A stretch of 64,000 bases of DNA from Haplodiscus bocki (lineage: Eukaryota): the NCBI GenBank assembly GCA_965655095.1, contig OZ296659.1:35092001-35156000 (forward strand). Reading direction: 5' to 3'. The first letter of the stretch is position 1. Each line of letters starts with the position of its first letter. The translations under genes and the position numbers were made by a program. The notes below the pieces were generated by a model, which worked only from the letters and a program-made list of their open reading frames with translations, searched no databases and was not told the DNA's origin. Positions 25,234 through 50,689 of the stretch are shown piece by piece.

Positions 25234-25419
25234 TTACACAGATCGAGTGTTAATAATGAGCTTTGAGAAGTCGTTGACGATAGAACGACATTTGGGACAT
25301 TCCATTAACTCCACAGCACATGCCTCACACACTACCATACAATTGCAGGGCTGTAACGCAACAGATCGTTCTCGGAGTCCACAGCAGATACACAACACTT
25401 CTTGCCGACGACAAATCAT
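25234..25419 (-). CDS. unk: unkempt exon 13 (RING domain, stop)
   Basis: cttag|MICRRQEVLCICC...LQPCNCMVVCEAC...CPKCR...TAA. Confidence 0.88.
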   Translation of the reverse strand: MICRRQEVLCICCGLRERSVALQPCNCMVVCEACAVELMECPKCRSIVNDFSKLIINTRSV

Positions 25420-28400
25420 CTAAGTGAAAAAGCTCACTGCATTTTACATTCTTTATTTTCCGCTTTCCGCATTATTTAACATGTAGAAGGAAAATCATGC
25501 GCTGAACGCCGCCGTTGTTTACGTTCACATGCCAGTTGCACGAAAATCGTGCACTTTCGGTCTTCAAAATTTCTTCACTAAAAAGTAGCAAATTAACCGT
25601 AGAATGCGATTGAAATAGTAACATTTCTCCGAATCAAAATTAGGGCTTTTTGGAAAACACTTCTTTGAACCCCTTTTTAGAAAAAAAATTGAGAAATTCA
25701 AAATACGGGAGAATGTGTAAAGTTTGGTCTAGAAAACATGAAAGTGTTACTACTAGAAGTGAAAAACTTTCTACTAAAAGCTGCAAGGCGGAAAATATCC
25801 CTGTAGTCGTCGGGCGTCTCGTTTAACAAGTGGCCAAAACCCGCCTACGTTCGTGAATGAATGATTTACTGCATAGAGGCAATATACGGAGAGTTCGCGT
25901 TACCCGTCAGTCTGAGAGCGAGTTCACTCGTGGCGAATAATTTACCTAACAAGGTACAGAAAGCAAGCGCGCTCCTCATTTCAGAATAAAGGGGGGGGGT
26001 AGTACATTAAGAAGAATGAATTTTGTTCGAAAATAGGGATTTTCAAGAAATATTTTCATTCCAAACGATTCTACAGCAAATTCGCTACTTTTTCTCAAAT
26101 CGGTGCTGAAAAATTTCCAAACTCAAAATCGTGCAATATGGCCGAATTGTGCAATGGTCAAGTTTATGTGAAAAACGCACGTAGCAAGATAAATTTCCTT
26201 CGTCATAAAATATGGGCGGAAAATAAATAGTTCTAGTGTAAAGATAAAATTGAGTACAGCCAGTTTTCAAAAATGAAAAGTGGTTTTCCAAAGCTACATG
26301 GTGTACTATCGAATCTAACTGTTCGGGCAACTCGCTCACTGGCGGATAACCAAGTGGCGATTAATTGATACTTAAATGTTCTACCAATTGGCATAAAGAG
26401 ACGTACCTTCGCATGCAGAACAATTTTCTCAATTCAGCATTGTCTTCAAAAAATTGCAATTCTGATTGATCATCCACAGATCCAAAACTTTTGAATCTCA
26501 CAAAAACTCTTTTAAGCCCGAAAATTAACAACCAACGTAGAAACAGTTAAAGAAGAACTTACATTATCTATTTTGCGGATATCACACGATAGAATATCCT
26601 TGACTTCTTGAAGCTGATCTAAAGTGAGAGACTCCATCTCCATTTCAGGAATTGGCAAAAGAATCTGCTGTTCAAAGCAAGAGGTGGCATAAGTCGAGGA
26701 GTTGATGCCGGCAACAGCAGCACCATTGCTGACCTTAATGCCACTCGGGGCAGACAATAAATTAGTTGCAGAGCCACTTTGGGAGTAGGGCGCAGCACCC
26801 AACGTCGCTCCTCCGTCGACTCCCGCTCCTGAAGAAACTGACACTGCACCCGCTCGGATGTTGGCCAATAACGGTAATCCAGGGTCGTAGCGCAAAGTCT
26901 GGAAAAACCCCAAAAAATATACAAAAAGAAAAATGGAAGAAAAACAAACCGATGTCAGCGTTTATGCCTGAAAAGAATAAAATATGCCACCATCAGTTGA
27001 AAACTTGGGAATATCGTCCTTACACTGATAAAATAGCTTCGCAAAAATCGAATTTTCTGTTATCATCAAACTATAATGTTCACATGTAAAATAGAATTCT
27101 GGGACTTCCTGGTACAGTGCCGTTCAAATAGGAAAGACGCAATTAGCGAGAAGTTCCAAAGAATACATTTCCAACATTAATTTTCCAAAAAAATTTTTTC
27201 CAAAAATAATCCACTTCATGCAAACGTTAATGTTGTGTACAACTTGAGCCCGTACCAACGTAGTGGCCAAGTTGAGCCCTCACTGGCTCGAAACATCAAT
27301 TTCACAACTGTTTTTAGGCAACAAGATTATCTGAAAACCCCACCTCCATTAAATGATAGAAATCCGTTTACCACGGTCCAGTGGTAGCACATAAGAGACA
27401 ATGGTAAGTTTGGCTCTTTTCGAGGGAAAGCTTCAAAATTTTAGGCTTTCGAAAAAATCTGTTTCCAATTTTGCGACTATTTCCGCACAAAAAAAATTAT
27501 TGAAAAAATTCAAACGGAGCAAAAACTTACATGCTGTAGATTCCTTTTCATGAATGTTGGTTACATAGGGGCTGCTAAAAGCTGACTATAATTCACGATT
27601 TAACAATGACAACTTTCATTTTTTTGCTATACCAATGGAAATATTCAATCATGCGACTTCGAGACTTTTCTCGAAAGATATTCCAGCTGGATACTAAACG
27701 AATTCGGCTTTGATTTGCATCAATTCTTTCATAGCAAACTTTTCACAATTTATTATTAAAAATAGCATTACTTCATCGCAGGATGATTTTTTTCCAGAAC
27801 GCATCAAGCTAAACTAACTCCTGTACACCCAGTATTAGACGGCAGTTGCAACGTGCCTCCTGATCCAGGTCCATCTCTCAAATCTTCTCTGCTTGCTGAG
27901 TTACCATCGAAAGAGGAGGGATGAGAAAGAGGACTCTGTGATGAGGGAGAAGATAGAATGCCGTATGTGAAGCTACATCTGGCACCTGGGTAGTTAGAGT
28001 TTGACGTCATGGATGCCTGAAATCACAATCACATAGGTTCGGATCGAGCACTATCAAAGCGAACACTGATTCAACTTAGTCGAGACAATTTTTCTCCTGC
28101 TCCTTAATTGGTGTTTCGGTGCGTTTTTCCGAATGTAAAGTGACCACCCGGGTTGACGTCTCAGAGAATTTCAGCGCTGATCACCTCTGATTAAGGAATT
28201 ACAGCGCTGTATATTATTGTATTATTTCAGAGCAGCAAAATCAGCGCCGATTTTCTCTGGGACAGCACTGACTTTTATTGGATTCAGGATGAGATTTTTC
28301 AGTTGAATTTTGTTTTTTCGAAATATTTAAAGTAACTCAATTTCGAGGCACAAAACTCTGCATTTCAGCTCACATGATAATAATATGATTGTAATTCTGT

Positions 28401-31400
28401 TGGCTTGCAACTTCGGCATCATTCAAATTGAATTTATACATGGAGAGAATTACGAGTAATAGATCAATACATTGCAAAGCTCAGTTTCTTCAAATTCCGT
28501 CATGACTTTTGAACTAGCTTTAGTCTAAACTTGTTCATAGAGTCATATGTCATCCGCAGATTTTCAGGACTTCGGAAAATTTTGATTTTAGAAGTACTTA
28601 TAGTGTTACTCGGTTTTCGTTTTCCGCGACTCGTCCAAAATAAGGAATTTCGTGCCACATTTAACTTTTTTCAAAAATGCAGCAAAGCTGCGTGGGGATA
28701 CAGGATTGAGCATACGGGCCATCATAGTAGCGGTGAGAGCGCGCAAAAAAGTAAAAAAAAATGATATTTTGTTCTTGTTTCCCAATCAATATTCTTATAA
28801 AGTGTAAGGACAGGGAAATTCTGAATTCTGAATTCATTTATCCCAATACGCGGGAAAACGTAATAAGGCTGAAGAGAGGACCCAATTGTTATCTCCAAAA
28901 TTTTCCGGAGCCCTGGGCGGCCACATTTTTAGATTGCTCGTAGTCGGTAATCACAAATGAGAACTAACATTGTCCTCAGGGTTGTAAGGATAGAAGTTGG
29001 CGCGGAACACTTTTGAGTCAGGGTCAGTGTTCAGTTGCGACAGACGAGGGATGTTCACAGGCTGACTAGCTTTAGTATTCACCATTCCTAAAATTCGATG
29101 CAAGATTGCAGGGAGTCAATTTTACCACCAAAATTATTTCTGTTTTGCAATCTAAAACATCTCTGATAGGAAAAACTACAAAAAATGTGTAACTACTCAA
29201 TCTTGAAAACTCACAGACAGAGTCATGGACTAGCAGGCCTGAATAATTTTTCTTCACTTGGCATTTCATGAAAATGATCAGTAAATTGTGATATTGCTCA
29301 AATTTTGAAGCAGCAAGTTTTTTCAAATCTAACCCATAGGTCCCATAAATTCTCCACTATTTGCTATCGAGGGTATTTGCGAGGATAAATTCCAGGACGC
29401 GCTATTACTACTGCCTGAGTTGCCCCCAGTAGAATTCATAGACCCACTCAAACTGCCAGTCGCGGATAGACCTTTCTGGGGAATCGCATTCCCATTAGAG
29501 AAGAGAGAGGACCCACCACGATGTTGATTTGGGTGGTAGTTTTCCTTGTTTGGGTTCCCGTCAGACATCATGCCCATCACACCTACGCCTGCACTATTGT
29601 TGTTCAACTCTTGCCCCAATAAGTCGACCCCGCCCACATTTCCAGTAAGACCTCCTGTGGCACTACTTCGCCCATCCAAACTATCCTCAAGGTCCACCGA
29701 CAACGACTTCTCGCCAAATAGATCGGTTACACTGCTCAACTGAGGCGGCTGCGATGCCACTGAAAAATAAAAAAATAAACTATGATCCTCAATGTTGCTA
29801 TGCTGTTTTCATACATAGTCGTCCCTTGAATATCCACCAGCATTTGTAAACTAACTTTTTTAAAGGGTTTCCAAATGTGGCGTTTAATATAGAGTACACA
29901 TAAGTTCCAGTTTTTACTTCTAGTTACAAAAATCGTCAAAAAAAGAAGGTAAACATCATACAAAGCGAATCGTAGAAAAGAGGGCTGCCAAACAATCCAA
30001 TTTCAGTTGCTGAATGTCTATTAGCGGCACTATCTGGATCTCTCTTTTCAAAGGATGTACTCTGTGCAACTACTGGGATGTTCCTAGACTTGGTTTCCAT
30101 ACCAGGGGCTGCTGAATTTGACCCCCCTGCTGACGTCACACATGCAGACACTATGGGAGACGACATGCCGATGGTTGGAGGCGAGGGTGTTGACCTTGAT
30201 GAAGCAAAGAGGGCGTGTCCGAACCAGGGGTTTCCTCCAGTCTGAAAAAAAGCGGAAAGTATAATAATCTAATTATCGTTATCTGGAAACTTCTTTGTTT
30301 CGATAATTTATTCAAAAATGGGGGCCTTTTAAGGAAAGTTCGAAAAATATACTAAGCTGAGCAAGAAGTAGCCAGCGGATAATTCCTCCCCTTGGGTACT
30401 TTCAGATTTGATACCTACTCATGGATAACCATCCATGATACATTCATGATTCATGGCCGACCATGCCGAGAATCATTCTATGATGACCGTATGGTATCCA
30501 TTAATTATGGATGATTTTCCATGGATGCAAAGAGAATTACAATCAAGTATAGAAAAATCTATGGTCAAGGAATAAGCGCGTGCAATGGCGGTCAACATCG
30601 GTTGTCTATAACTAAATCTGTTTTTAGTTGGAGCGTATTAACAAGCCCGACAATTGTCGTGACTTTTCGTTTTTTTGGGGGCTGCGCCGACGGACAAATT
30701 TGATTGTTGATTGGTCGGTCTGATTGGCCCGCCGCCTTTCCTGACCTTCACTGCGTAGCACAACTCCGCTGCCTCTTGCTATGTTTTTGTTGAAGTTCGT
30801 CAAACCTCAAAAACTCCCATAGTACATTGGGTAGGACTACAGGGTTCTGATGCGCTAGGTACGGGTTCCATTCTCAGTCTTTGCCCATAATTTTTATTTC
30901 ATTATTACGATTCTGAGACTCCCATTAAAATAGTATTTTCCGTTGAGAAAACTATCTGAAGAGAAATTTTGCCATTCAGAAGTTTTCCTTTTCCAAAACT
31001 TGCCAATGCCACGCTGACTTCGTGTGGCAGACTAATGAGCGTCTTGTATAGTAGGTACTACAATTAGTTCAAACAATTCAATTAGTTTTTGGAATACTTC
31101 ATCAAGTTTCAACTTTTCGAAATTTTTTCTGTTTTCGCAAAACTTTAATAAAGGTGGAAAAAAGACATTCGAAAAATAATTCTACAGCAAATTTACCACA
31201 TTTACTGATTTCGAAAGAATTCAAAAATTTTTAAGAGCGTATATAATTGAAAAATCTTTCTATTTCACTTGCATTCTACGGCAAATGCTATAATCCAGAG
31301 GAACATTTTGAGGAAGGAAAATATATTGTTTTTGAATTTTTCATATTTTCTAATGATTTTCGAATTTTGAGCGGAAAGTTTTCAGACTTTTGGTGGAAAA

Positions 31401-34400
31401 ACTTTGGCATGGTTGTCAAAACTGACAACATTCTACGTGTCCAAAGGAACATTTTGATGGAAATAATTCTTTTGAAAAAATTATAATTTATCTTTTTCGG
31501 ATTTTGAGCGGACTTTTTTTCGGCACAAGAACCTTCCAAATAAAATGGAAACGACATTTTAAGAAAATAATATCAATTGATAGGCTTTCTACAGCAAATT
31601 TGCCACCTTTAGCGATTTAAAAAAAAATCGAGATTTTTTTGAATAAATCTATCCATTTCTCCCAAAAAGCACAAATTTTGAACGTTTTGAGAAATCTTAC
31701 CATTCCAGTCGCTTTTTATGGCAAATTTGCTACAAATTGGTGAAAAAATTCATGTTCAGAAACGTGAACGAACATCGTTTTTAGTGTGAACGCAATTGGC
31801 AGACATCGGGTAATAAAAACGTTTCATTTGAGGGATCATTTTGCTTTGATGTTGTAAACAATATGGCGCAAAAAAAATAACGATCCATCACAAAATTAAG
31901 CAACCCGGTTAGGCAGCAGTTAACTTCCTATTACAAGCCGACTTTATGTCTGCACAAAACTTTAAGCCCTGTCGGATACTTTTGTCCATAGAAGTTTATT
32001 TAAGGGTTTTTGTCAAATTATTTTCTGTTTCCCGAAGAGTTTCTCCTCTGGAATGAAACAACTCAACCTCTGTAAAACTTTTCGAGAAAAAAAACGCTTG
32101 ACCCCCGGAAAAATTTTGACTTCCCGAAATTAGAAGTTCATTACAAAAAAAAAACAACAAAGTTGATTCTTTCCCCAAATTTTTTCAGTATGTGTTTGGT
32201 GTTGTTTTCAGGATCTCAAACACCAAAAAGCCAAGCGATAACAGGAAACCATTTTCCTGGAACACGCTATTGTGTAATCTTCGTTGTCGGACAAAAAATA
32301 TCCGGTATTCTCGGCATTCGAAGTCACTTTTCTCAAACACAAGCTGGACTTCTTTAAGGCATTAATCGACAATTTTCGACCCGTAGACGGTCATTTGTGT
32401 ACAATGACATAACTTGGTGTACATTCATTGCATCAGAAAAAAACACCGGAAATTTGAGTATACCAAACAATTCAAAACAAATTAATACCAAAAACCTTCC
32501 GTGATCCGTGATGCCCTTTTCCTCACGTAATAGATATCAGCCACTAGTGACATCCACAATACCTCTTTAAAAGTTCATTGTTGACATGCAGAAAACAAAA
32601 ACAATTTGAAAATCTACACACTTTCAATTATGACGGAAATTCGAGTGGCGGTTAACCGAGAGTACTGATACATTGTAAACTAAAATATTGACCTCTATGG
32701 TGGGTAAACGAGAGGGTTGACTTTCGAACAATTTCAGCGTTATAAATTTCACCTTAATGGAGGATAATCTAGTGGCAGATAATCGAGTCAAAAACTCTAA
32801 AACTTCACAAAATTGACATTTCTGGCGGATAACCGAGAGGCGGTTAATCGAAAGTGCCCATTTTTACAACTTTACAATTTTACGTATATTGTGGATACTT
32901 GCGTTGCAGATAAAGGACTTTCCCAAATTTTTGAATTGAACAGTAATGATGCTGATGGCGGAAAATCGAGTGAAGTTAATTGAAATCCCGATTCACACGA
33001 ATACTTGTAATGTTTTCGAGCAACGCATGAGTGCTAAAACTACTACGTCAGCGAAGCATAAAGGCAATTGGCTCAATAAAGCCAGTGAGCTGAATCAAAA
33101 TTTTACATAGTCTACAATGGGATGTTTCAATAGTAGAGGAAAAGGTCAAAAGGTGTACCTATAGTATCGAAAACTTTCGGCTTCGATATTAACTACGGAT
33201 CTATCATTTAACAACAATAAAAAGCAGGCCAAATTTTCAGATTTGCGGTTTCGAAAGCGTCCAGATTGAAGAGAGCGATCATATTGAAGTTTTAAAGATA
33301 CCGTATTTACTTGAAATGTAGCTGCATTCAAATAGAAGCCGCGCCAAAAGTCGTTAAACAAGGTAGAGACCGCACACGAATAGAAGCCATGATTAAAGAT
33401 AGGATTCTGGCAAAAGTAGAGTTCTGCCCCCTTAATGTTAATAATAATAAATACAGAAGCGAAGCTGTGCTTCGGAACATTTGCTCCAGCAGAATATTAT
33501 ACGAGTACACTATACAATTAAAATTTTATATACAAGTAAGAAACGCTATAAGATTTCTTTCGATTGATAATTTATAAGAAAAAACTGATTTTCTGGCGGC
33601 TATGGCAGTCAGTAGAGCATACAACTGCAGCGCAAATGGTCCCAGGTGTGAGACAAGGTCACTCCCTCGTCTCTTTTGTCAAAATCTAAAAACTTGTGCG
33701 ACTTGTGAACGGATTGGAAAAATATTCAGCAGCCTGTGTTGACACTTCTTGCCCAAGTGTAAAAAAAGACATGAAACGCGATATGACGTTTCGAAAACAG
33801 TTTTTCAAAAACTATTAGTAATCCACACGTTGTCAGAGGAGCAAGTCAACCGGACAGACATTTTCTAAGATTCTAAGGATATTTTGACCTCAAGGGCAGC
33901 ACTTATTATGGATCATACTACATATTTTGGGACTTGTCCAAAATCATCCCGGATAATTTCTTTCATTTTTACAGCCAGCGTTTTATTCGATAGTTCCCAA
34001 AAAAGTTAGTCTTCAGATAACTCTTAGTTGAATCTGAAAAAAGCTTGAAAAACTTCGAAAAAGCTGAAGCTCCAATTTAAGTACGGGTTATTGCGAGAAA
34101 GCGGAAAAACCTGATTTTTATTTCGAAAATATCAAGAAACTTTAAAGACAGAGGAGAAGCGGAATCTCACAACACATTCTGACTAGTCAGGCGACATCAC
34201 GGATCCCAATTCATCAGAAGACAATGATGATTGGAAACATGACCGATATGATTCAAACTTTTTGAGGGACATACTACATCAACTGTCAATCACGAGTTCG
34301 ATCAAAAAAATCAAATCGAGACTACTGCCTGTCACAAGGTCTCATACTCGAAAACTTGATATGTTAACACAGGGGCGAAACTGCACTTCACATACACTTA

Positions 34401-37400
34401 CAACGAAAGCCAGGAAGGACATCGAGTAATTGCCCGTCGACGAAAACTGCTCGATTGAGTCTTGCCAACTTTTCACAACAGCAAATTTTTACAGAAGCAA
34501 TGGTTCTACTGAACAAGAAAAAGAAAATACAACTCTTCAAAAGCAATCATACTTATACCAAATCAAGTTAACCAACGGGTAGTCCCCGAGAGTATTAACT
34601 TTCAGAAATTTATATTATTTTTTTCGGAATTTCAAACTAGAGGTCAAGAATTTTCATGTGGAAGGTACGAATTGGTGTCTTCCGGTTTCTCTTCAAACTC
34701 AAGACAATGCCGGTTTCCAACGCCCACTGGATGGCAGTAAAACACATTGGAGGGAAACACATTTGAAAAAGACCACTTTGAACAAGACGCAATTTTACTG
34801 TCAAATAGCAATTAGTCGACGGTGAATTTACCCAACATAAACTTACTTCACCCTTCAATGCTTACTGGTTTATTTACGTTTCATTACATTACGTTTCATT
34901 ACACGCACACAAAAATTTACTGTCAAATATTAATTAATCGACGCTAAAATTATCCAAACACGCACTTACTTTACCGTTCAATGCTTACCTGAGTATTTAG
35001 GTTTCATTAAATCCCTCACCGCGCTTGCCAAGGAGGCCGGCCAAGCAAGCACATGAAATCAATTTCCGGCCCTATTTCCACAACCGAACTTTTGAACCGA
35101 TTAACAGCCGATGCAAGCTTTGAATAGATTGGAAAATTAGGCGGTTGACGATCCTATTTCAAAACACTTGCTAGTCACAACTTCAATCATGTCTTTTCAG
35201 GTTACGTCATTTTGCTGTCCAATGTACAAAAAAGTTTGCACAGCAAAGGACACAATTACGTATAAGTACCTGCCACGCACCCTCAAATTTTGAATGATAT
35301 ATCAATGTCTTTTCACGTTACGTCAGTTTGCTGCCCAATGTTACCAGAAGTTTGCACAGAAAACATCGCAACGATGAACCAGTACATGTCTCACTGTCTC
35401 ATATTCAAAAAAGAAGCCCAAGCCCGATAGAACTTCCAAAAAAATTGCGATAACCATAGGCCCTCTTAACCCTTACTCCGTTTTTCCACGAATTGGGACC
35501 AATGAGATAAAATTCTCGCGGTTCATACTTTGTTATTATATTGATTGGCAAACAAGAAAAAAGTCAAAATTTTGTAGATTTGCGCGTTCTCAAGGCTACT
35601 ACGATGGTCCGCCCTGATTTCTCTAACGCTGCTTGGCCGCATTTTTCAAAAACAAATTGAATAGCGAACGAAATTCTTCACTTCGGACGAGGTCGCATAA
35701 TTTCGTTCGAAAAAGCGTCAGAAAAAAAAACAAAAATCCAGTAACACTATAAGTATTATGTAAAATTAAAATTTTCCGAATTCCTAAAACTTGATATATC
35801 AATCATATCTTTCCAGGTTACAGCATTTTGCTGCCCAATGTTTCAGAACTTTGCTCAATAAAAAACGCAAAAATGAACAAGTAGCTGCCAAAGGAGACCG
35901 TTTTGACCGTTTACACTAACTAAATCACTATATTCTCTGATGACGTCAAAAAATGCAAATTTTGGACAAGCTAAAAAACTAAGCATTAGCCGATTTCAAT
36001 ACGTCTCCTACCTTTCAGTCAGAATGTGTAAAAAACAACAATTGAAACAAGAGATCGAGTCCAAGGTAATTAATGGTAATCTAGCGTAGTCAAAGCGGAG
36101 TAATTCAACCCGAGACATTTTCCGTGGGGCGCACTAGTTGGCTACAGCAGTCTTTTCCGACCAGCTGCATATGAACTGAAGCAACATTCGAATTGAGAAT
36201 GCAAAATTTATCCCCAAAAAGGCGATGAGCCGCCTGAACACGGTAATTAGAAATGTTTTGATTCGTAGTATAATGATAGAACATGATCATTGGCTCCACT
36301 TCAATTAAACATAAACTAACAGGTTTCTTAGGTTGAACAGCAACAGTCGACGTCACACGCATGGCATCTGGGGATGAAAAAAGACTTCCACTGGACTCGA
36401 AGTCTCCGCCCACAATTGAAGAGCCATCATTTGGTGCCCCGGTTGCCGTCAATTTCTCTGAACTGTTCACCTTGTCTGAAAAGGAATTGCAAATTTCAGC
36501 CAGGTTCCCGGATAAAATACAAGCGGTTGAAAATAAAAAGTCCATGAAGTCCGATTACACCCTGAGCATTTCAGGAAAAAGAACCAAGGTGGCTGGCTTT
36601 CGTGTAGTTAAATCATTTTCAGATGGGCGTAACTGCATGGAGTATGCACGCAGTATAAATGCAATAGGAAAACTGAACAATCAAAAACTCAGTTCTTGCG
36701 TAATCTATATCAAAGCAGCATTCACTGACAGAGTTAACAGAGGAAAACACGGTAATTTAAAAGAATGAAAAGGGTAATATGCAAAAGAGCATAACCACAA
36801 CTACTAACCACTGTTAAATTCAGGAGTCGCTCCAGCGTAATAGTTTGTTTTCACCGCTTCTCCTATTCCCCCATGTTGGTTTCTATTGCTAGTTAGTGCT
36901 TCACTGTAACCTCTTCCGCCACCTACATGATGCAAATTAGAACCCACCACTGGAGAAGAATTACATGCAGTGGCCAACGGAGATAGAGTCCTGGATGCCA
37001 CCTGGCGACCTTTGCCCGATAACCCAGGACCTCCCGGATGAATTACAGCAGCTGCACCCACGATTGATGAACTATTGTTACTTCCTAATTTTTCAGGACC
37101 GCCTCCCGCTGCTGCTCTATCATGGTGGTTATTGTTCTGATCTTTATTGAATGAAGAAGTATTAGCACTTCCACTGTTAAGTTCTGTGGCCGAGATTGAA
37201 TTGCGAACTCGCATGTTATTGCTTGCTTTGTTATTAGATGAGGAATCTATACTACTGCTACCGCCGACCGAGCCATCGCCCATGCCACTCATGGCCCCCT
37301 GGGCCGATGCGATGGATGCACCTGTGTTCTCTTGATGAGAGAAGGCGCAGTAAACTCCTCTGGGGCAGCGTCCAGTCTGTTGGTAGTCATGACATTTAGT

Positions 37401-40400
37401 AGTCTTGTAAATCTGTGGGAAAAAATAAAACCCTATTTCAAGTCAGTTCAAGAACAGAAGCATAAACATCTCAGATGAAAAAGTGTCCCATATATCTAAG
37501 CTATTTTTTTCCGCCCAAAACATCACACACTTGATCTATCAGAAAAATCATTCAATTTCCACAGTTCATTTTAATGCAGATTTTTCCCATCAATCGAATT
37601 CACGAAATGATTAACGTAGCTACCCAAAATCATAATCTCGAAGACATTGTGTTCAAAAGCAAAGGTAACAAAAAAACTGAAGACCACAATCGATAGAATT
37701 TATTTACTTGGCAGTTGGCAACAATTTTCTTTGGGTAATAAAATAGTCCAAAAGTATATGTAATTTGACAAAAAGTGAGGATGCTCATTTTTTGCCATTA
37801 ATTTTAAAAGCCCAAAACTAACATCCGGATGAAACTGTTGTTCAACTCTAGTATGACAGTACCCACATTTGTCTCCATCGGCACACACCGCCGGCTCGCA
37901 CCACTCGTCAGCCAGTTTGACAGAAGGACATGGCGTGTTTCTATATGTGGACGCATACGGCGAACGTCTCCTGTCTTTGGCATTGTGGTACAGAGGACAT
38001 GCAAAGCCCTGCCGACACGATCTGGACGAGTTTGAGCTAGTCCTCTTGCACGGCTGAGTTTTATAATTGCGCAAGATGTAATCTCTATCTAAAACAAACA
38101 CCAAAACAACTGAATAGTGGATAGAAATGCAAATTTATTAAACTACAAAGTGAGAAAAGAAAAGCCCGGAACGCTCATGTAGGCACTGCCACAAAAAGCT
38201 TAAAATTCATAAAGGGTATTATAAAAATAGGGAGGCGGTTGTAGAAACAGAGAAACAATAAAATAATAAAATAGAGTGTTTTCTCCAACCCGTATCCATG
38301 GCCTAAAAACCTTTTTGTCCTACCCTCCAGACCACCGGAGCCTTGTACACTTCTGGTCATTTTGGGTCTGTCATAAAACTAAAAAACATTCTGGACCCTT
38401 TAGCAGTGAAAAAACGAGTAAGTAATAGTCCTCTTTTCACTAACGTGAAGCCCCGACCAAAAATACAAAGAGCGACAAACCCACGTTGTTCATTCAGGAG
38501 AGTTTAGTCACGCCCATTATGTTGTCTCATCTTAGACACATTACCAACATAAAATTATACAAAGACAATCATTCAACACTCGCTGCACCGACAACATCTT
38601 CGAAAAATGTCTTCATTTTGTCTGGAAACCGCATTTTGTCTGTGTGGACCAATGATTTCATCCGAAAGAAAGAAGCTAGTTGCAAATTGCTGACGTTTTG
38701 ATGAAATTTGAACACGATAAGTTCATCTCTTTCGAACAAAAATGTCAGAAGATAAAATTTTCCGGAAAACTCTCAAAAAGTATCATATCTTGGATTCTTT
38801 CAACAGATGAAAACTTAAACAACTCCGGTTGTTACTCAGAATAGATGATAGGCTTTTCGGATTTTTTTAAAAAACTTTTGCTGCGAGGCTACTACAAAGT
38901 TCTTCATAAACTATCTTTTGACATAGAATAACAACAAAAAAGAATTTTATAGCCAAAAAATTTTCATCGTTGATAGTTTAGCTTCTCGATGTCAGTTTGA
39001 TTAAAAACTTGTGCCTAGAAAGCATTGATATGCCAAGGTAGAACATTGTTAAAAATAATTTTCGAGCAAGTTTTTTTTCGCGTGAAAACAGTCAAAAGAT
39101 ATCGGATTCCTTTAGGAAAAAGTAGCAAATCATCAATCATTTTCTTATTGGCACGGTCATATAGAAGGATACGAAAAGATGGAAAGATTAGTGAGATAGC
39201 ACTTCAAACGAGTAGAAGACAAATTGATCCACCATCTTTTTCGCAAACAAACCCATCTGAACATTTTTGGATCACAACCATGAAGGATTATATTGTAAAA
39301 AGGGCCCTTAAATTACTTCTTTGCACGATTTAGACGCAGACGCCCACATGACAGAATACAAGACTTCCAACATGACAAAGCTTCCACAAAAAAGCCGACA
39401 GTAGATCGATTATGTGGTTTCTTTTGCAGAAAACCAATAAAGTTTCGAAGCACAACCAAAAATAAACACGTTAAGATTCTTTCTAAATTCTGTTTTAAGT
39501 TGAAGCTATTTCAATGTCTGCGTGTTCAATGCTCAAGCTTTTGAGCTGCCAATGTGACAAAATTCAATCAATTTTCGAGAAAAAACTTCGCGAATAGTTT
39601 TAAGACTTCAACTAAAACTCAGCGTGTGATACAAAAGAGTCTCCTTGTTGTATCTGGTCAAAATTAGGGCCATCTGAAGACCTAGGTTCCCGGGTATTAG
39701 ACTATAAAGTGACAAATTCGCTCCAAAAAATTACGTTGTTTAAGCGTCTTCCAAAAAAATAATAACAGAGCTCCTTGTGCTTCAGCAAAATTTAGGTATT
39801 TTAGACACCGAGGTTTCCGAACGTTACAACTGAATGTTCCAAAATACCTCCAAATTGGACAAAATAAATCGATTTCCAAGTATCTTTGCGGAAACAAACA
39901 ATCGAAGACTATTCTGACCAAAATCAGAAATCATGTGACATATCAGAGCCTCCTGTTTGAGCCCATACGACATATGTACCAGAACAAAAAACATAAAATT
40001 GGTGACATTCTTCCACTATCCAAAAATTTACAAGTTCCTTTCGCTGAATTACCTGTCGAAAAAATTGCACCGTGACCAAATTTTAGTGTGCTAAATAGAT
40101 TGGGTTCTCGTCGTTAAGGCCATGCAAAATTCAAGTGATTGGGAGTCTATGTACACAATAAACGATTTCGAAAATGACAAAGTACCGCAAAAATTAGCTC
40201 GGAATTCATGTTTCTTGTTGAAGAGCCCCATCGAAAAATTGTCAGACTGAAACTAAAAATTAGTATATGGGAGACTAGAGTCTTTCCAAGTTTCTGCAAA
40301 AATCGGGAAAATTTTTCCAATATTGGGGCATAAAGAGGTTTCACTTCGCTTTCGCTCACCTGAATAAAACAAAAAAAATCGCACCCATTTCAAAAAAGCT

Positions 40401-43400
40401 TTCTCGGCAGACGTGTCAATTCTGAGAAAAGAAAAATATTACTGAAAGCTAAAGGAAACTGCATTGAATTCTGGCTCAAATGCATGAAATTTTTGTTTCT
40501 AAATTCAGTGGCGATGAGCGCGCTGGAGTTTACCAACTGCTTCCAAGAGATAATTATTGATCAAAGATATCTAACCTGCCCATTTGCTATTTTCGTTCAC
40601 TTCATTGCGTTCCTTGTCTAAAGCCGCGGGGAAGGATCTGTCGGGTGATAACGAATCGCTCACATCACTCTCCTCTTTGATGTCAATCACAGGCGTCCTA
40701 CACAAAAAAATACTGCAGCAGATTAGAAGTAGGCAAAGACTTATAACTGGTTCCGTAACTGTCCATCAGTGAACTAAAATTTCAATCTGATCGGATTTCT
40801 CTGCACTATTGTCTGTTTAAAGACTTCCACAAAGAATTCAACCGATCTACTTGTACTGGTCATTGCGGAGGTAGTGCGTTTGGCAAACGCAATAAATAGG
40901 AAGCAAAATAACTGCGACACATGCTTGAATTCTCTTCCGAGGAAACGACTGGCAAACTCAATTACGAGTTCATTGGGTTTGATCTTTTTTGACTTATCGT
41001 ATTACTTTTAGTATTTTCTGCTCAACATCGAGCCTACACTTTAGCTTTACTAGTACACTAAAGAATTGAATACTCGATATAGTCAAAATACATTATTTCA
41101 GCGGCTATGAAGGTTTTTGTGATTATTACAGGAACAACCTCCAGTAAATTAATTGATACTCGTTCACACTCAGACGGTTACGCTGCAGCAAACAATTCTT
41201 GTCATTGACAGTGGTTTTGTATGCACGCTGTGATTATTTTTCACTTCAATTAGCCAAAGCTCCTGTAAATTTTGATCAATTTAGAAAATTATATACAAAA
41301 AACTAACCTAAGGTCAGAAGGGCCATGGGCATAAGGACAATGTCCTCTTTCCTTCTCTAGTCTACATATCAACTTTCCATCCGATCCTTTCACACTGTCG
41401 TATGAACAGATACTAGTTTTGTAGAAACGCGGATGAAACTTTCTTTCCGTGTCTCCGGCGTTATGATGCAAATATTTACAACTAAAACAAGCATCTGGTC
41501 AGGAAAAAGTTTAGATCGATGCAGATATCTACAGTACTGATTTTCATTAAGTGAACTCATGAGCAAAAATTGAACAACTAGAGCTGATTTTCTCAAAGCA
41601 CAATGATTTATGAGGAAACAGTAAAGAGCAGAAATTTTTGAAATCTCCAAAATCTCGAAAAAGTACAGGGAAACAACAAGATACAATATTTTAGCTTTGA
41701 ATGTTTCCCAAAGCATTGGACTCTTACAATTATCTAGCAAATGCAGTTCTGAAAATTTACGTTACTCAAGTGAAGTGAATTTTCTATACATTCATTTATA
41801 AAAAGAATTTTTTTGAGTTCAGAACTCAGGAAATTGTGAAAACCAAAACTTTTAGGAGAGATTGAAAGCTGAAAAACGGAGCATACAGTTTTGTACCTTT
41901 TTGGACACATCAGATTCTTGGAAGAACGAGCGTTTTCGAAGAAGGTGAAATTTGGGTCAAATTTACTTCGCATGGCTTCGGATGGATTCTAAAGTTTCAT
42001 TTGAGCCCATCAAACTTGAATTATTCATCCATTTAGTACATCAAAATCAGGAAAAGGTCCAAAAATAGCTAAAATTGGGGTCTTAAATTCTTCGAATATT
42101 GAATAGACTTTCATTAAAAACAATTGTGATCTTAACAAAAATTATTTGAAATTTCTATGAATTATTTACATAACTCCTAATTTTTGAAAGTTTGAGCTTC
42201 AAAAACGTCAGCTTTTAATCAGGAGTTCACCTAATTAAATAAAATCACTACTGTAGTTTTTTAAAGTCCAACCGGGAAAAATATAATTAACTTGACATTC
42301 ACAAGTTCTACGTCAAATTTTTAATTCACAAAAAACGCGAGAAATTGTTACCCTAAATAGCATCATCGCATACTAGATTCTAATTGCACGAGAGATTTTA
42401 CCTTGGAAGGTCATTTTCTGAGAAGTAGATAGCTTACAAGCTAATGCAGTTGTGAAGCACATTCGTAGAAGCAAAGGTAGATTTTTCGATTCCTATTCCA
42501 TTTTAAATGAAGATAAAGTTATACATTTCATATCCCTGTGTACGTCTGACGTTGATAAAAGGCTAACCTGTCCCCATCGGGGCACTGTCCCGCGTCGAGA
42601 CTGTACTTGAGGCAATACACGTGAGGGGAGTACGTAAACTGTCCGTCCTTCTCAATGGCCACCTTGCGTCTCTTCTGAGCCTTGAAGTGCCAAAAGAAGC
42701 AGCAGTAGGGCTTGTGGTGTCTGCATGCCATCACACCCCCAGATGAAAACTCCGGGCACTGCTTCACTCGAAACTGACTCATGTACCTGTAGAGAAAACA
42801 TGAGTTGTCAAATGTTTCCATTGAAAATCAAGGATCAATACAATTCAAATAATCGGGGATCAAGCGAACAATCTCCACCCCACACTATTTAAACCATGTG
42901 TAGTTGATCAGTATTAAAAATCGTATATCGTCCGATTGGTCCACTAGGCTCGGTGATACTTAACTGACGCCATTAATAAACACTCTCATATGAAATAATA
43001 TTTTCTCAAGCGTGGCAAGGAGATGTACCAGTGGTCATCCAATAATTTGACAACCGTACATGTTCGATTATTTGAGACGATAAAGATGCAAAATTAAATA
43101 TATGTATCTGTAGATTGTTATTGGGAAGCAGTCAAAGCAGAGAAACGATATTTCTGATTTCTGAGAAATGCCGCACTGCAAATCACTCCACTTTTCTACA
43201 GTAGTGTTAAAAATAAACGCATCAACGCACAAATCTCAAATTCGAATATCACAAAAACCTAAGGATTTTCAGAAAATGCCCTCAGTAAAAGTTTCCTGGA
43301 ATTGTATCTAGCTTACAATCATTTTTGATTGAAGCGTCTACGGTCAAAATGCAGAAGTTACGAATAACCATTTTTGGACAATCTTGGCTCAAATTGGCGG

Positions 43401-46400
43401 TTTTTTTTCCATTTTTGAACCACTTTAAAAAATGTTTTCCAGCTAAGTTAACATTCAAAAAATTCACCTGAATATCCTGAAGCCACTGATATGTTTTGAA
43501 GCAAAAACTAATTTTGAGAAGTAAAAAAATCGAGATCCCAAAATAGAGATTTTTGAATTTTCATGTTTCAACATTAGATCTTGAAATTTGCAAATTTTAA
43601 AACTTCCATTCTATAGAAAATTTCTACATAACTTTGCTTTTAAAAGCTGTCAGTGGCTTTAGGAGATTTTTTCAGGGAAAAAAAATTGCGAAAAGTATTG
43701 TATAACACACTCAAAATTAGGCAAAATCAATAGAAATTGTCTCAAGTAGACCAATACTATTTGCGTAATTTTAATTAGCAAATGAAATTTCTCAAATTAG
43801 GTCTATTTTCTTGATGCGTTTGTTTTTCACACTACTGCATTTCGCATGTAGACGTCGCTCATTTCTGAGAAATCGATTTGTATTGCAGATTATTGATTTC
43901 TGTAATTGAATTTTTAATAGGTGGAAATTAGGACGTCATCCAACAAATTCGGTTGAGTGCTTCGGCCAAAAGACCACAAGTGAGGAACAAAAGAAAAAGT
44001 TCCACCAACCAGCAGTTTAGAAAAGCATGAAAAATCTAAAAGTACTAAAAGACCCCTCTTGACGTTTTTGCGGTCCCCTTGATACCCTGAAATTTTTTTT
44101 TCAAAAATCAATATATTCCGCAAGACCAAGGCTCCCCAACGAGTATTTCGTAACTTCCGGGTGGCGTCGGCTTGTTCCGTCTTCTAACGAAAAGTTTTGT
44201 ACTAAGCCGAATACGCCGGGAGCGGCTGAGACGGCAACGCTCGTAACGTGCACATTATTCGTTGGGGATTATCATGTTTTCTAGTCGACAAATTTGTCTC
44301 ACAGTATCCAAAATCTTTGTGAAGAGCCCCTACTTTGTACACGGAATGAGAAGGTCCGCAGCACGCTAAACAGCAATAAATGGTTTTATATGGTGGAGGA
44401 CTCTACAGTTCTTCATTTTCAGACCCTCGCGAAAAAAGGTGTCTCAAAAGTCGGTCTTTATTTCCATGAGCGCCAATTAAAAACAGTATACTTTCTACCG
44501 AACAAAACAGGCCAAGAACGGCCAAAATCGGGAATGGCCAAAGTCCGGGTCGTTCGGATGGCTCAAAAGACTCAACACAAACGCCAAGCATGTCATAAAG
44601 GAATGGCCTATAAACACGCATTTCTAAGGCTCTTTGTTAGAAAAATGCTTTAATGAACAATGAAAGTTAAATTTTCATCGATTATTTATTTACAAGTTAA
44701 GTATTTTCGCAAAAGAATGACAAAATGCATCATCCAACCGACATCGCGGATCCTCTAGGCTGTCATCATTTTAAGGAGCGCTGAATGGACCCAATTCAAC
44801 CGCCAGTTATAAAACGTTCCACGAACAACGCGAGAAAACATCAAAATTTCAATTTCAACTCAAAAAATTTCAGATTAAAAATCAACTAACATCTGAAAGC
44901 ATATACCGTGAAATCGATCATCGATGACAGAAATCACAGCTGTAGTTTTCCAGAAGGATTCCGAGTTGGAGTATCGAAATATGTCTATAATAAAGGCATT
45001 TTCGCTACTATAGGCCCATCAGGATTCCAGCTCCGATGTAAAAAAAAAACATATTTCATGGTAACCAAAAACGAGAACTCTGCTTCAAGTGGAACTCTAT
45101 CGATTGACACCGTGATTGCAGAAACAAGCAGGCCATGAGCAGAGGAAACAAGAGTTTGAAAATCGAAGCATGACAAGACTGACTGATTGCACTTTCTGGC
45201 ACTTCTGGTCATCAAGAAAACACTGCATGGAAGAAATTCTTTCACTAGTATAGCCCAAACAAGTAGAAGGCATTAGATCCAGACTTGAGAAGTGTAAATC
45301 AGTCAATAGTTACTGAGGAAAGCGAGTTTCAAAATCGAGATGAGTCCATGTTGCAAAAATTTTCGGCCATTCTGGTCCATCAGGATTCCAATGCACTGAA
45401 CAAAATCAAGATATTTTACTCCAACAATCCATCAACAAAAGTAAACTCTAGAGTGAGACGTTCGAAAGAGAAATCAAGTCAGTAGTTTTGGAAACACGAG
45501 TTCGAAAATCCATAACAGTGCATAACAAAAACAATAGTCATTTTCGCGCTGCCAAGACTTCAAGGCAGGCACGGAAAGGTTCGTTTTTTCAAATCACGTC
45601 AAGAAAAAGGAACTAGTCAATTTCGGCTTTGGTGGAAGGAATCAAGTCTAAGGTTCTGAGGAAATATGAGTTTGAAGATAGAAATTATTCAGTAGTGAAA
45701 GGATCTCGGCAATCTAGGACTATCAGGACTTCGAGGCAAGGTACAAAATCATTTTTTTTTCGAAACCCAGTAGTCCACCAAAAACGGAAAACTACATACT
45801 GACAGCTTGAAGCACGAAGTTGAGTCAATGTAATGGACAACCACGATTCCAAAGTCGGGAAAAAAAGTCAGACATGACAGCAGTTCTTTTGCAATTTCCG
45901 ACAACCACAATTCCTACGCAAAGATCAAAATGAATCAATCGTCACATACAAAATAGCCCTAGGAATAGAAAAACGTCAATTGAGACCTCGATGAAAGAAA
46001 CTAAGCCCGTAGTTACGGAGAAAAAACAGTTTGAAAAAACGGAAGAAAACAGTTTGAATCTCGGAAAGAATCAATATTATTGGCACAACTTCGAGTCCTC
46101 GGGCTATTAGAAATCCGAACCAAAGATCGAAAAGCATGATTTCACACTCGAATTGTCCTCTTTTACGTTTAATGTGAGCGATTGAAACCGTGATGGAAGA
46201 AAACAAAACTGGAGGTACAGACAAGCATGAATTCGAATCGGGATGAATCAATATTGAAAGCTTTATTCGGAATTTCCCATCAAGATCCTGGTTCAAGGAT
46301 CCGAATGTATGGTCTTTGAAAAGCATCCTCCTCTATGAATGTTAAGTTTTCGATTGAGACCTTGATTGAGAAAAAACCTGTAGATAGGGAGAAACATGAG

Positions 46401-48510
46401 TTCCATTGTCTGGATGAATCAAAACTATAATAAGCACTTTTCGGAAGTTTAGGACAATCAGATTTCCGAAGCACGGATCAAAAAATAGGAGTCTTCAGTC
46501 TTTATCCCTTATACGAACAAAACATTTTCGACTGACTTGATTGAATCTTTAGTTATGGAAAAAATTGAAACTGAATGTCGTGTAAGTCATAAGTAAAAAT
46601 GTTTGGAGCAATTTCAGACTATTCGGACTTCGACGCAAAGAATGGAAAAGATAGGCTTAGAATCGGACACTTCCCTAAAAGTATAAAATTTTCGATTGAG
46701 AACTTGACAAAAGAAAATAGGCCTGCAGTTACGGGGGAAAAGAGTTAGAATCTTGCGATGATACCAAAAGAAAAGCACAATTAGGAAATTTCGAACTATC
46801 AGTTATACGGACCAAGGATTGAAATAGATGATTATTCAATCAAATCCTCTTACACAATTGTCAGGACATTGATTGAGGTCTTGATTCAAAAAATCAAGAC
46901 TACAGTAAAGGATAAAATTGTTTGATTACGGAGCTCATATAACACCAATAGCACTATGTTGAGTTTTCGGAACATCAGGAGTCTGATGAAAGGATCAAAA
47001 CACATGATCATTCAATCGAACTTTTTCCTAACGTGTGAAGTTTTTGATTGACACCCCGCAGGAAGAAATAAGATTTGTAGTTGGTGTAGTTAGAGAGAAA
47101 CATTTCGATTACATGCATGAATAAAAAAACTTTTTTGGAATTTTCGGACTAAAATGATTGTGATGCAAGGATCGAAACTAATGCTTCTTTATTCGAAGAC
47201 CTTCTACAAGTCTAATGATTTTGATTGAGAAATCGATGGAAGAACTCGATCCTGTAGTTCACGTAAAACATGAGCTAGGAAATCGAGATGAACGAAATCT
47301 AAAAGCTTCATTTTGGAATTTTCGGACTATCAAGAATTTGATGCAAGAATCAAAAATAACTGTTTTACAATAGAATCCTTATTTACGATTATAACGCTTT
47401 CAAGTGAGACCCTGATGGAAGAAAACAACCAGTGGTTGTTAGCAATAAGGGGTTTCAGAATCGAAATTTATCGATGAGAGCACTTTTTGGAATTTTCGGA
47501 CAATCAGGATTGACACGCAGGGAACAAAACCATCGATTCGTCAAACTAGTACTCTTACACTAGAACCCTTTCGACTGAGAACTGGTTGGAAAAATTGAAC
47601 CTTGTATTTCTGGAGAAAAATGCGTACAACTTCAAAGAAACTCGATACCGATTGCGCTTTTTGGCATTGCCTCAATTTGAGGATCACAGAACGAAATGTT
47701 TCAACACCAACACCAAAACTTTGAAGTACACTTGTAATTTTTGACCCGAAAGAATTACGAAAGCGGAGAAAACTGCTGAGAAAAGGCTGAAACAAAAATT
47801 CAATTATTCACATCAGTGGTTACACTTTATCAGATTTATAGGCTTCTTTTTCGGCTGTAGAGGAAAATCAACAGAAAAAATTGCAATTTCTTAACAAATA
47901 CTGCTGAAAAAACTATTTGTTTCAGTTACATGGGATAACTCATAAATTTTGAAGAAGAAACCCACCCATCAAAAAACCTTGAATTCTGACGAAAAAACCG
48001 TTTTTTTCGCAAAAAAGGTTTTGTTCGGGGGTATCTAAAATTATATAGAAATAATGAATCGATAGCGGGATTTGAACGCGTTAGCTGTGGGATACCTAAT
48101 TGCAGTGCCACCTTCACATATGCATCATGCATTACAATAAAGATTCTGCAGACTGCATATCTGAGCGTCATGGGCAAAATCAGGAAAATGAAAAAAGTCC
48201 CAGTACTCGTTTGAAAATTTCCCTCCCGAAAAACTTTTAGGACGAAAAAAGAAAAGGCCATTCAAAAGACCCGTGGGCAGTTGAATCATTGCTACATGGT
48301 TCCATTCATACTGAAAAGAATATAAAAAAAAACAGAATTCAATTAACATCAAAACGAAAGGAAAAAAAATCTGTTTAAAAAAAGTTTAAAGGAGAAAAAC
48401 CAGAGAAGAACTGCCTATATTTGCTCATTTCAGACTGAAATTTTGCCAGGAGTCAGACCATCTGTGTTCATCCAAAGATCTTACCGCCAGCGATTAGCCC
48501 ATTCAGCCAT
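25234..48510 (-). CDS. unk: Unkempt-family CCCH zinc-finger/RING RNA-binding protein; 13 exons, 1036 aa
   Basis: join(complement): 48485-48510, 42568-42786, 41308-41481, 40576-40697, 37823-38088, 36809-37412, 36321-36475, 29962-30241, 29334-29759, 28969-29087, 27819-28016, 26563-26898, 25234-25419 = 3111 nt; all introns GT-AG with matching phases; six CCCH fingers with Unkempt linkers (YMSQFRVKQC, DTERKFHPRFYKT, NYKTQPC, KDRRRSP, HTRVEQQFHPDIYKTTKC), PVNIP motif, C-terminal RING. Confidence 0.9.
26563..26898 (-). CDS. unk: unkempt exon 12 (pre-RING helix)
   Basis: ttccag|TLRYDPG...MESLTLDQLQEVKDILSCDIRKIDN|gtaagt. Confidence 0.8.
27819..28016 (-). CDS. unk: unkempt exon 11
   Basis: tttcag|ASMTSNSNYPG...SPSSQSPLS...CTG|gttag. 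Confidence 0.75.
28160..28290. repeat. Short intronic repeat with recurring CAGCGCTGA-like palindromic units
   Basis: tcagcgctga, acagcgctgt, tcagcgccga and acagcactga within ~130 bp. Confidence 0.45.
28969..29087 (-). CDS. unk: unkempt exon 10 (absent from ORF track; SQPVNIP motif)
   Basis: ttttag|GMVNTKASQPVNIPRLSQ...PEDN|gttag; phase 1->0. Confidence 0.8.
29334..29759 (-). CDS. unk: unkempt exon 9
   Basis: tttcag|..ASQPPQL...LSVDLEDSLD...GPM|gttag. Confidence 0.8.
29962..30241 (-). CDS. unk: unkempt exon 8
   Basis: tttcag|TGGNPWFG...FEKRD...PLFYDSL|gtatga. Confidence 0.78.
30813..30885 (+). other. tRNA-derived (SINE-head-like) fragment in an unkempt intron
   Basis: A-box TAGTACATTGG (30820-30830), degenerate B-box GGGTTCCATTCT (30863-30874), AT-rich tail; acceptor stem does not pair. 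Confidence 0.4.
31150..31900. repeat. Intronic repeat with recurring TCTACAGCAAATTT(G/A)CCAC-like motif (also near 26070)
   Basis: Motif copies near 31181, 31275, 31589, 31718 and 26070. Confidence 0.5.
33595..33665 (+). other. tRNA-Cys-like pseudogene or SINE head
   Basis: 'GTAGAGCATACAACTGCAGCGCAAATGGTCCCAGG' parallels tRNA-Cys(GCA) GTAGAGCAT.TGACTGCAGATCAA.AGGTCCC.GG; B-box decayed. Confidence 0.45.
35185..36030 (+). repeat. Dispersed repeat family A, copy 3 (three internal sub-repeats)
   Basis: CATGTCTTTTCAGGTTACGTCATTTTGCTG-like units at ~35189, 35303 and 35803; 3' part matches 19690-19820. Confidence 0.65.
36321..36475 (-). CDS. unk: unkempt exon 7
   Basis: ttccttttcag| ...QPKKP|gttag; needed to convert phase 1->0; alternative in-frame acceptor at 36457. 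Confidence 0.7.
36809..37412 (-). CDS. unk: unkempt exon 6 (ZF6 + G/S/N-rich disordered region)
   Basis: ccacag|IYKTTKCHDYQQTGRCPRGVYCAFSH...|gttag. Confidence 0.9.
37823..38088 (-). CDS. unk: unkempt exon 5 (ZF4, ZF5)
   Basis: YILRNYKTQPC...CRQGFACPLYHNAKDRRRSP...CGYCHTRVEQQFHPD|gttag. Confidence 0.93.
40576..40697 (-). CDS. unk: unkempt exon 4 (ZF3-ZF4 linker)
   Basis: gtgtag|TPVIDIKEE...ENSKWA|gttag; phase 2->1; resembles the PVYDIRE...W linker. Confidence 0.85.
41308..41481 (-). CDS. unk: unkempt exon 3 (end of ZF2, ZF3)
   Basis: ttttag|CKYLHHNAGDTERKFHPRFYKTSIC...CPYAHGPSDL|gttag. Confidence 0.92.
42568..42786 (-). CDS. unk: unkempt exon 2 (ZF1, start of ZF2)
   Basis: ctacag|..YMSQFRVKQCPEF...CRHHKPYCCFFWH...CPDGD|gttag. 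Confidence 0.92.
45000..47540. repeat. Diverged ~175-bp tandem satellite (~14-15 units) in unkempt intron 1
   Basis: GGAATTTTCGGACTATCA..A...GATGCAAGGATCAAAA-like anchor at ~46268, 46441, 46610, 46783, 46960, 47136, 47314 and 47489, weaker copies back to ~45017. Confidence 0.7.
48485..48510 (-). CDS. unk: unkempt exon 1 (MAEWANRWR), 26-nt coding part
   Basis: ATG..TGG CG|GTAAG; phase 2 matches the exon 2 acceptor (G TAC ATG). Confidence 0.6.
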
Positions 48511-49770: not shown

Positions 49771-50689
49771 GCCGTTTGCAGATTAGCGCCAGAGAGATTT
49801 ATTATGCGTACTTAATTAGAGTAATTAGGCGAATGCACTGACTTTTCAAAGGTTGGAAATGAAAGAAACAATTATTATACCATGGTAATTATTGTTAAGA
49901 ACTATGTTTGCTAAAAGCCCGTCAAAGGATTATAGTTTGTGAAAAAGCTTATTCTGCTTGTTTAATGTCAGCTGTTACGAACGCTGAAAGATTGACCTAA
50001 GATTTTGATTCGACTGATAATCTAAGTTCAGTGAAGTTTACTGTGGTCTAAAAGAACTGAAATGAATAGAACTGAGAAAAAAATCGAAACTGCCTACTTT
50101 CTGTCAATTTTGTCTAGCTCAGTTGTCTTATGAAGTCTCTGGAACACGGGAAACCCTCCCAGCACCCCCCAGGCGCGGCCTGTAGTCAAGGCTAATCCAA
50201 TACACGATCGGTTTCTAACGAAAGTACATTGTGTTTCAAATGTTTGCTGTTCAGACCGTCGTGACTACGATACGTATTGGACTGATAAATATACATTCGA
50301 CGTTGCTTAAGCTCACAATTTAGCGAATCCGAAATTACAGTACTTCGAATTTTCAATTGGTACATTCGTTAAATCAACTTTTTTGAAAAAAAGTTCTTTG
50401 GAGTTCCTCAGCGAAACACGAGTGAAAAAAACCCTAGATTATCTCACAGAGCAATCCATAAATCAATGAAAAGGATAATTTATTTCAAGTTGAGAGTATT
50501 TTTGTATAAAATAATCCGTAGTATAGCCAACAAGGCACGATGTTTCTATTGGAACTCTTGTCCAGATGTTACAAGCTTTGCTACAATGTCTACTACTTTA
50601 CTTCTACAATTTGTATCCTGAAAATAAAGTACGCATTTTCTAAAACAGAGAACTAAATCATCAAACAATGGAAATATTGCTAAAACGTT

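Follow-up and report, generated by a model that had tools for sequence, protein, structure and literature searches.

The Unkempt Gene of Haplodiscus bocki

We examined the introns of a gene for Unkempt (UNK) in Haplodiscus bocki, with attention to their 5′ splice sites (donors), most of which begin GTTAG. The gene lies in a 64,000-nucleotide (nt) stretch of the genome (GenBank assembly GCA_965655095.1, contig OZ296659.1, positions 35,092,001 to 35,156,000 of the forward strand), hereafter the window, which has a G+C content of 37% and contains no runs of N. CCCH motifs and long open frames assign it to the minus strand, where it spans roughly 48.5 to 25.2 kilobases (kb) of the window. Pfam assigns its exons to zf_CCCH_5, zf-CCCH_UNK, zf-CCCH_UNK-like_4th, zf-CCCH_11, zf-CCCH and zf-C3HC4_3. 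Both marks of UNK membership are present, namely two clusters of three CCCH zinc fingers each and a C-terminal RING finger in the last exon (zf-C3HC4_3, E=1e-8). Protein searches, run exon by exon, matched the mouse Unkempt structures 5ELK (fingers 4-6; E=9e-33) and 5ELH (fingers 1-3; E=4e-20 and 1e-9). Judged by its sequence, the gene is Unkempt, with six CCCH fingers and a RING.

Throughout, H. bocki is species A, B is a close relative, and C is a more distant relative used as outgroup. Each donor is located by its first base, the G at +1, in window coordinates. The exon model of species A is as follows.

48485..48510, minus strand: candidate coding part of exon 1; ATG at 48510-48508; donor GTAAGA at 48484; 2-nt phase fits exon 2; unconserved in B
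42568..42786, minus strand: exon 2, zinc finger 1; donor GTTAGC at 42567; zf_CCCH_5; 5ELH match ends ...CPDGD; 87% identical to B from acceptor to donor
41308..41481, minus strand: exon 3, zinc fingers 2-3; donor GTTAGT at 41307; matches 5ELH residues 76-127; 85% identical to B; phase 2 into exon 4
40576..40697, minus strand: exon 4, linker; donor GTTAGA at 40575; 77% identical to B up to the donor; in phase with exons 3 and 5
37823..38088, minus strand: exon 5, zinc fingers 4-5; donor GTTAGT at 37822; Pfam match; 5ELK match to ...EQQFHPD; 81% identical to B
36809..37412, minus strand: exon 6, zinc finger 6 and a low-complexity region; donor GTTAGT at 36808; zf-CCCH; tblastn matches in B and C; identical in a second assembly of species A (L010)
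36321..36475, minus strand: exon 7; donor GTTAGT at 36320; conserved to the donor in B; acceptor common to B; phase fits
29962..30241, minus strand: exon 8; donor GTATGA at 29961; alignment to B runs from acceptor to donor
29334..29759, minus strand: exon 9; donor GTTAGA at 29333; one piece in A and C, split by an additional intron in B
28969..29087, minus strand: exon 10; donor GTTAGT at 28968; 83% identical to B from acceptor to donor; open frame
27819..28016, minus strand: exon 11; donor GTTAGT at 27818; 74% to B by tblastn
26563..26898, minus strand: exon 12; donor GTAAGT at 26562; 86% identical to B up to the donor; acceptor common to B
25234..25419, minus strand: exon 13, RING finger and stop codon; zf-C3HC4_3; 79% identical to B from the acceptor to slightly beyond the stop

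Exons 2-13 were fixed by three criteria: fit to mouse Unkempt, reading phase, and conservation footprints against species B. At junctions 2/3, 3/4, 4/5 and 5/6, the spliced translation follows mouse Unkempt residue by residue, with none gained or lost (5ELH, 5ELK); CPDGD-x-CKYLH in species A corresponds to CPEGD-E-CPFLH in mouse, for example, and FHPD-IYKTTKC to FHPE-IYKSTKC. Exon lengths and frames leave the reading phase unbroken at all 11 junctions. These results bear out an earlier reading of the window made from sequence only, which held the boundaries of conserved zinc-finger exons to be set by protein homology and phase. Species A and B can be aligned in exons only (70-87% nucleotide identity), their introns being unalignable. 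For exons 2-5, 7, 8, 10, 12 and 13, the alignment starts at the acceptor AG and stops no more than 5-6 nt past the donor GT, and for exons 6, 9 and 11 it is partial or at the protein level only. No same-phase GT[AG]AG alternative lies within 45 nt of any of the 11 accepted donors.

The donor letters recur in independent DNA. The second assembly of species A, from ENA (L010; 97-99.6% identical, introns included), agrees with the window in its donors at exons 2, 3, 4, 6 and 7. Logan contigs from four DNA runs cover 36.7-42.6 kb of the window, and among the differences listed, none falls on a donor. The acceptor of exon 2 is conserved in A, B and C, and an upstream exon must therefore exist; the candidate given above showed no conservation when compared with B and is compatible in phase only.

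Thymine at Donor Position +3

The general donor consensus is GTRAGT/GTAAGT (PMC1779574, PMC12480690), and GTAAGT is reported to be the most frequent and strongest donor hexamer in 25 eukaryotic species surveyed (PMC12480690). Full-text literature searches returned no GTTAGT/GUUAGU donor consensus and nothing relevant on acoel or xenacoelomorph splice sites. In the Unkempt gene of species A, T occupies +3 in nine of the 11 checked donors (exons 2-12) and A in the other two, a departure from the purine at +3 that is a feature of the GTRAGT consensus and not an absolute requirement of U2-type introns. Six of the nine GTTAG donors are GTTAGT, two are GTTAGA and one is GTTAGC; the remaining two donors are GTATGA and GTAAGT. 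The sequence-only reading had counted nine GTTAG donors among twelve, without giving the strand. Its list matches ours exactly for exons 2-12, while the twelfth donor, GTAAGA of exon 1 at 48484, is unconserved and stays unconfirmed. At least nine T's in 11 donors would arise by chance with a probability of 4.6e-8 at a background of 10%, and of 0.0026 if the background is the T content of the introns (sense strand: T 35%, A 29%).

The rest of the donor is close to the consensus downstream of +3, with A at +4 in 10/11, G at +5 in 11/11 and T at +6 in 7/11, followed by mainly T from +7 to +10. On the exonic side, G is found at −1 in just 5/11. GT at +1/+2 and AG at the 3′ end are present in all 11 introns between exons 2 and 13, and all 12 acceptors have a T-rich tract ending in CAG (seven) or TAG (five). 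No donor of species A resembles the U12-type donor /RTATCCTT. As far as their sequence tells, the introns otherwise carry every mark checked for U2-type GT-AG introns.

The +3 position of the exon 5 donor (window 37820) is polymorphic in species A: the window and the four DNA runs (X1-X4) read GTTAGT, and the second assembly reads GTAAGT (L010:9702-9707). Both T and A are therefore evidently tolerated at this site within the species.

The Same Donors in Two Relatives

The Unkempt gene of species B was found by a word search with exon 5, which returned one protein, 95% identical, on two long ENA metagenome contigs; the contigs are 98-99% alike and were interpreted as two haplotypes of a single species. 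Species C was located in two further ENA assemblies by the same kind of search with exon 6, and its exons were worked out by the same rules, the donors of exons 10 and 11 resting on phase and weaker homology. The tree of A, B and C was inferred from sequence identity alone. The donors compare as follows.

Exon 2 donor: A GTTAGC; B GTGAGT; C GTATGT
Exon 3 donor: A GTTAGT; B GTTAGG; C GCTGGT (GC donor forced by phase)
Exon 4 donor: A GTTAGA; B GTTAGT; C GTTAGT
Exon 5 donor: A GTTAGT; B GTTAGT; C GTAAGT
B-only intron within exon 6: A absent; B GTTATT; C absent
Exon 6 donor: A GTTAGT; B GTGAGC; C GTAAGT
Exon 7 donor: A GTTAGT; B GTCAGT; C GTGAGC
Exon 8 donor: A GTATGA; B GTAAGT; C GTGAGT
B-only intron within exon 9: A absent; B GTTAGA; C absent
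Exon 9 donor: A GTTAGA; B GTGCGT; C GTATGT
Exon 10 donor: A GTTAGT; B GTTAGT; C GTGAGT
Exon 11 donor: A GTTAGT; B GTTAGT; C GTAATT
Exon 12 donor: A GTAAGT; B GTACGT; C GTAGCG (GTAACG in the second C assembly)

The share of donors with T at +3 is graded across the three species, at 9/11 in A, 7/13 in B and 2/11 in C (Fisher test: A against C, p=0.009; A and B together against C, p=0.012). T is the commonest +3 base in B (T7, G3, A2, C1), where both B-only introns start with GTT, and +3 A is found in only 4/24 donors across A and B. The gene of species C has A6, G3 and T2 at this position and otherwise shows the ordinary AG/GTRAGT pattern; its exonic −2A and −1G, each present in 8/11 donors, are largely lost in A. 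Since B is rich in +3 T and C is ordinary, the T's accumulated within the lineage of A. Parsimony with C as outgroup places three purine-to-T changes on the stem of A and B (exons 5, 10 and 11) and four more of the same kind on the branch of A (exons 2, 6, 7 and 9), and it finds no fixed reversal from T along the way. At those last four exons, the species carry three different bases (T in A, G in B and A in C at exons 2, 6 and 9; T, C and G at exon 7), and thus +3 turns over fast, ending at T in A.

Intron 3 of species C can be removed in frame only by way of a GC donor, in the context AG/GCTGGT (L009:5907 and L008:5879), and this sequence is identical in both assemblies. The two B-only introns (L001:12497-13087, GTTATT...CAG, 591 nt; L004:4911-7258, GTTAGA...CAG, 2348 nt) split exons 6 and 9 in phase and are probably recent gains in B. 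The one in exon 6 differs markedly between the haplotypes (74-83% identity, against 98-99% in its flanks), and the one in exon 9 contains dispersed repeats. In one B haplotype (L003, about 9.7-15.9 kb), the exon 9 intron holds a long terminal repeat (LTR) retrotransposon with open reading frames (ORFs) for gag, reverse transcriptase, RNase H and integrase, which lengthens it from 2.3 to 8.4 kb; the other haplotype is without it. An origin of the GTTAG ends from introners was considered and rejected, as the intron positions are common to C.

UAG-Rich Blocks in the 3′ Untranslated Region

In the Unkempt recognition element, whose best match is UAGNNUUU, an obligatory UAG precedes a U/A-rich motif, and Unkempt is reported to be a translational repressor, mainly cytoplasmic, that binds mRNA (PMC4358403). 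Two blocks in the 3′ untranslated region (3′UTR) of the gene are conserved in B amid unalignable sequence and contain many TTAGT and ATAGT.

24791..24935, minus strand: conserved 3′UTR block 1; 84% identical to B; 8 copies of TAG against 3.3 in shuffles
22591..22812, minus strand: conserved 3′UTR block 2; 82% identical to B; 9 copies of TAG against 3.9 in shuffles

Both are candidate sites for a UAG reader, for example Unkempt itself or Musashi.

Interpretation

We consider it reasonably probable that the GTTAG donors are functional U2-type 5′ splice sites and that the way this lineage reads +3 has changed, with U now favoured. The requirement for a purine at +3 would have been lost, releasing the position from pairing with U1, and U would be favoured there, mildly to strongly, giving an effective donor of GUUAGU followed by a U-rich stretch. 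Recognition may then be carried by +4A, +5G, +6U and the downstream U-tract, by base-pairing to U1 positions 3-5 and to the ACAGA box of U6, and the exonic −2 and −1, both weak in A, may weigh less, as may +3. A U at +3 could form a U-G wobble with the G of the U6 ACAGAGA box, or could be matched by a compensating change in U1, which would be an A replacing the second U of ACUUACCU (U1 nucleotides 3-10). The cause would act in trans, and hence genome-wide. Bolder, and in our estimate improbable, is the idea that an animal clade has re-set its donor code genome-wide to GUUAGU, by a U1 A opposite +3 or by U6 wobble, and has been caught midway (+3 T at 18%, 54% and 82%). The sequence-only reading had proposed a donor shift at the level of the lineage, with a variant U1 or U6 as a possible cause. 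The graded +3 T in the same gene of B and C speaks for a lineage shift; from one gene, the shift is best read as lineage-level and may extend genome-wide.

Relaxed constraint could by itself leave +3 almost free, to be filled by T-rich composition and AT-biased mutation with no preference for U, in which case genome-wide +3 T would be about 30-40% and species A would lie in the upper tail. We regard this as unlikely, though well short of far-fetched. An intron sense strand with 35% T, a base distribution in B that fits an unconstrained site (T7 G3 A2 C1; p=0.15), three differing bases at four orthologous sites, the T/A polymorphism within A, and the hint of lax donor recognition in the GC donor of C are all what it would lead one to find. 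However, 9/11 is improbable at a frequency of 0.35 (p=0.0026), adenine, which would pair with U1 and accounts for 29% of the bases in introns, is scarce at +3 in A and B, and all seven inferred changes toward species A go to T. The GTTAG donors might alternatively be peculiar to this gene, the UAG inside GUUAG being kept as a binding site for Unkempt or another UAG reader (Musashi), such that unspliced or intron-retaining transcripts are autoregulated. The UAG in the Unkempt recognition element (PMC4358403), the likeness of several A donors to UAGNNUUU and the 2.3-fold enrichment of UAG in the two 3′UTR blocks speak for the idea, and it had been raised in the sequence-only reading. We find it very unlikely nonetheless, because such a device predicts conservation of the UAG, yet four of the nine UAG donors of A lack it in B (GTGAGT, GTGAGC, GTCAGT and GTGCGT), the ordinary gene of C has one GTTAG donor only, and the exon 5 site is polymorphic within A; Unkempt is, moreover, reported as mainly cytoplasmic, and introns are unmentioned in PMC4358403. 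As for artefact, in which exon boundaries were mis-set or the assembly erred and the true donors are nearby ordinary GTRAG, junction use is predicted here from genomic DNA, but this account is close to refuted by the residue-level fit of four junctions to mouse Unkempt, consistent phase at 11/11 junctions, A/B footprints that end at the donors, the absence, up to 45 nt from each donor, of a GTRAG in the same phase, and the recurrence of the donor letters in the second assembly and four DNA runs.

Several points weigh against a change in how the lineage reads its donors. The evidence comes from one gene, with 11 to 13 sites per species, and the 7/13 of B does not differ significantly from what an unconstrained, T-rich position would give (p=0.15). 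Canonical GTAAGT persists, being the donor of exon 12 and the alternative allele of the exon 5 donor. A search for RNA runs carrying the locus found only four DNA runs of one study. Neither the window nor some 100 kb of loci reached at random, of which 60 kb belong to species A, yielded a second host gene: a long interspersed nuclear element (LINE) and repeats fill window positions 1-22.5 kb, with no block conserved with the adjoining 14 kb of B; the Maverick ORFs of the window, short and overlapping in different frames, tell nothing about introns; no Pfam-bearing gene was found in B in the 10 kb further upstream or the 14 kb downstream of Unkempt; and five more loci, sampled at random through LINE copies, gave no multi-exon host gene. 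Rfam at the gathering threshold detected no small nuclear RNA gene, U1 or U6 included, when applied to the window and to 13 of 15 fetched loci (about 258 kb; all but L007 and L015).

The core of the 5′ splice site and the 5′ end of U1 are among the most conserved eukaryotic signals, and the few documented lineage-wide departures are instructive on how recognition is divided among U1, U6 and proteins. Should the shift prove genome-wide, graded +3 U in three relatives would provide a natural experiment on the drift of a core signal (in U1, U6 or protein factors), and software for gene prediction and splice-site scoring that was trained on GTRAG would annotate these genomes wrongly. If the shift is confined to this gene, or reflects mere relaxed constraint, it would be a minor curiosity.

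Other Features of the Window

Intron 2 contains a high-copy repeat (window about 41476-42271), where contig depth in the four DNA runs is about 10-60 times that of neighbouring sequence and many partial joints occur. Window 50546-52640 (minus strand) carries five consecutive Maverick ORFs that overlap in different frames, and no ORF in the 49.5-62.5 kb interval exceeds 258 amino acids; at least the 50546-52640 part of this Maverick is therefore frameshifted and not intact. A fragmented non-LTR retrotransposon with an RVT_1-type reverse transcriptase occupies window 6457-9782 (plus strand), and related copies, 45-71% identical, are found on several long ENA contigs of A and its relatives. One gene called in ENA on the contig of species A (P0002; L010:10001-10720) is translated with Trp at a TGA of the DNA. 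The metagenome caller applied a TGA=Trp code to animal DNA, and the products so called are therefore artefacts.

Comparison with Known Systems

The resemblance of the donors to the Unkempt recognition element (PMC4358403) lies in the GUUAGUUU-type donors, which have UAG followed by U-rich sequence, and in the conserved UAG clusters of the 3′UTR. They differ from it in that the donor UAGs are unconserved between A and B and in that the reported binding is on mature cytoplasmic mRNA. Compared with the canonical metazoan donor MAG/GTRAGT, which complements the 5′ end of U1, the Unkempt donors of A share GT at +1/+2, A at +4, G at +5 and T at +6, and as in canonical U2-type introns, acceptors end in AG after a pyrimidine tract and intron positions are common to relatives. 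The differences are T at +3 in 9/11, a weak exonic AG (−1G in 5/11) and a U-rich run past +6.

Budding yeast, with its GUAUGU donor, provides a lineage-wide departure from U1 complementarity at one position while its U1 is canonical, and thus a precedent for a one-position shift. Yeast deviates at +4 (U), however, and is intron-poor with near-invariant sites, whereas the shift here is at +3 and the sites are variable. Loosened donor recognition in animals is exemplified by the tunicates Oikopleura and Fritillaria and the copepod Eurytemora, which use many non-canonical donors; species C, which needs a GC donor in the odd context GCTGGT, has something in common with them. Those lineages alter the +1/+2 dinucleotide, whereas in Unkempt of H. 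bocki GT is kept and +3 alone shifts.

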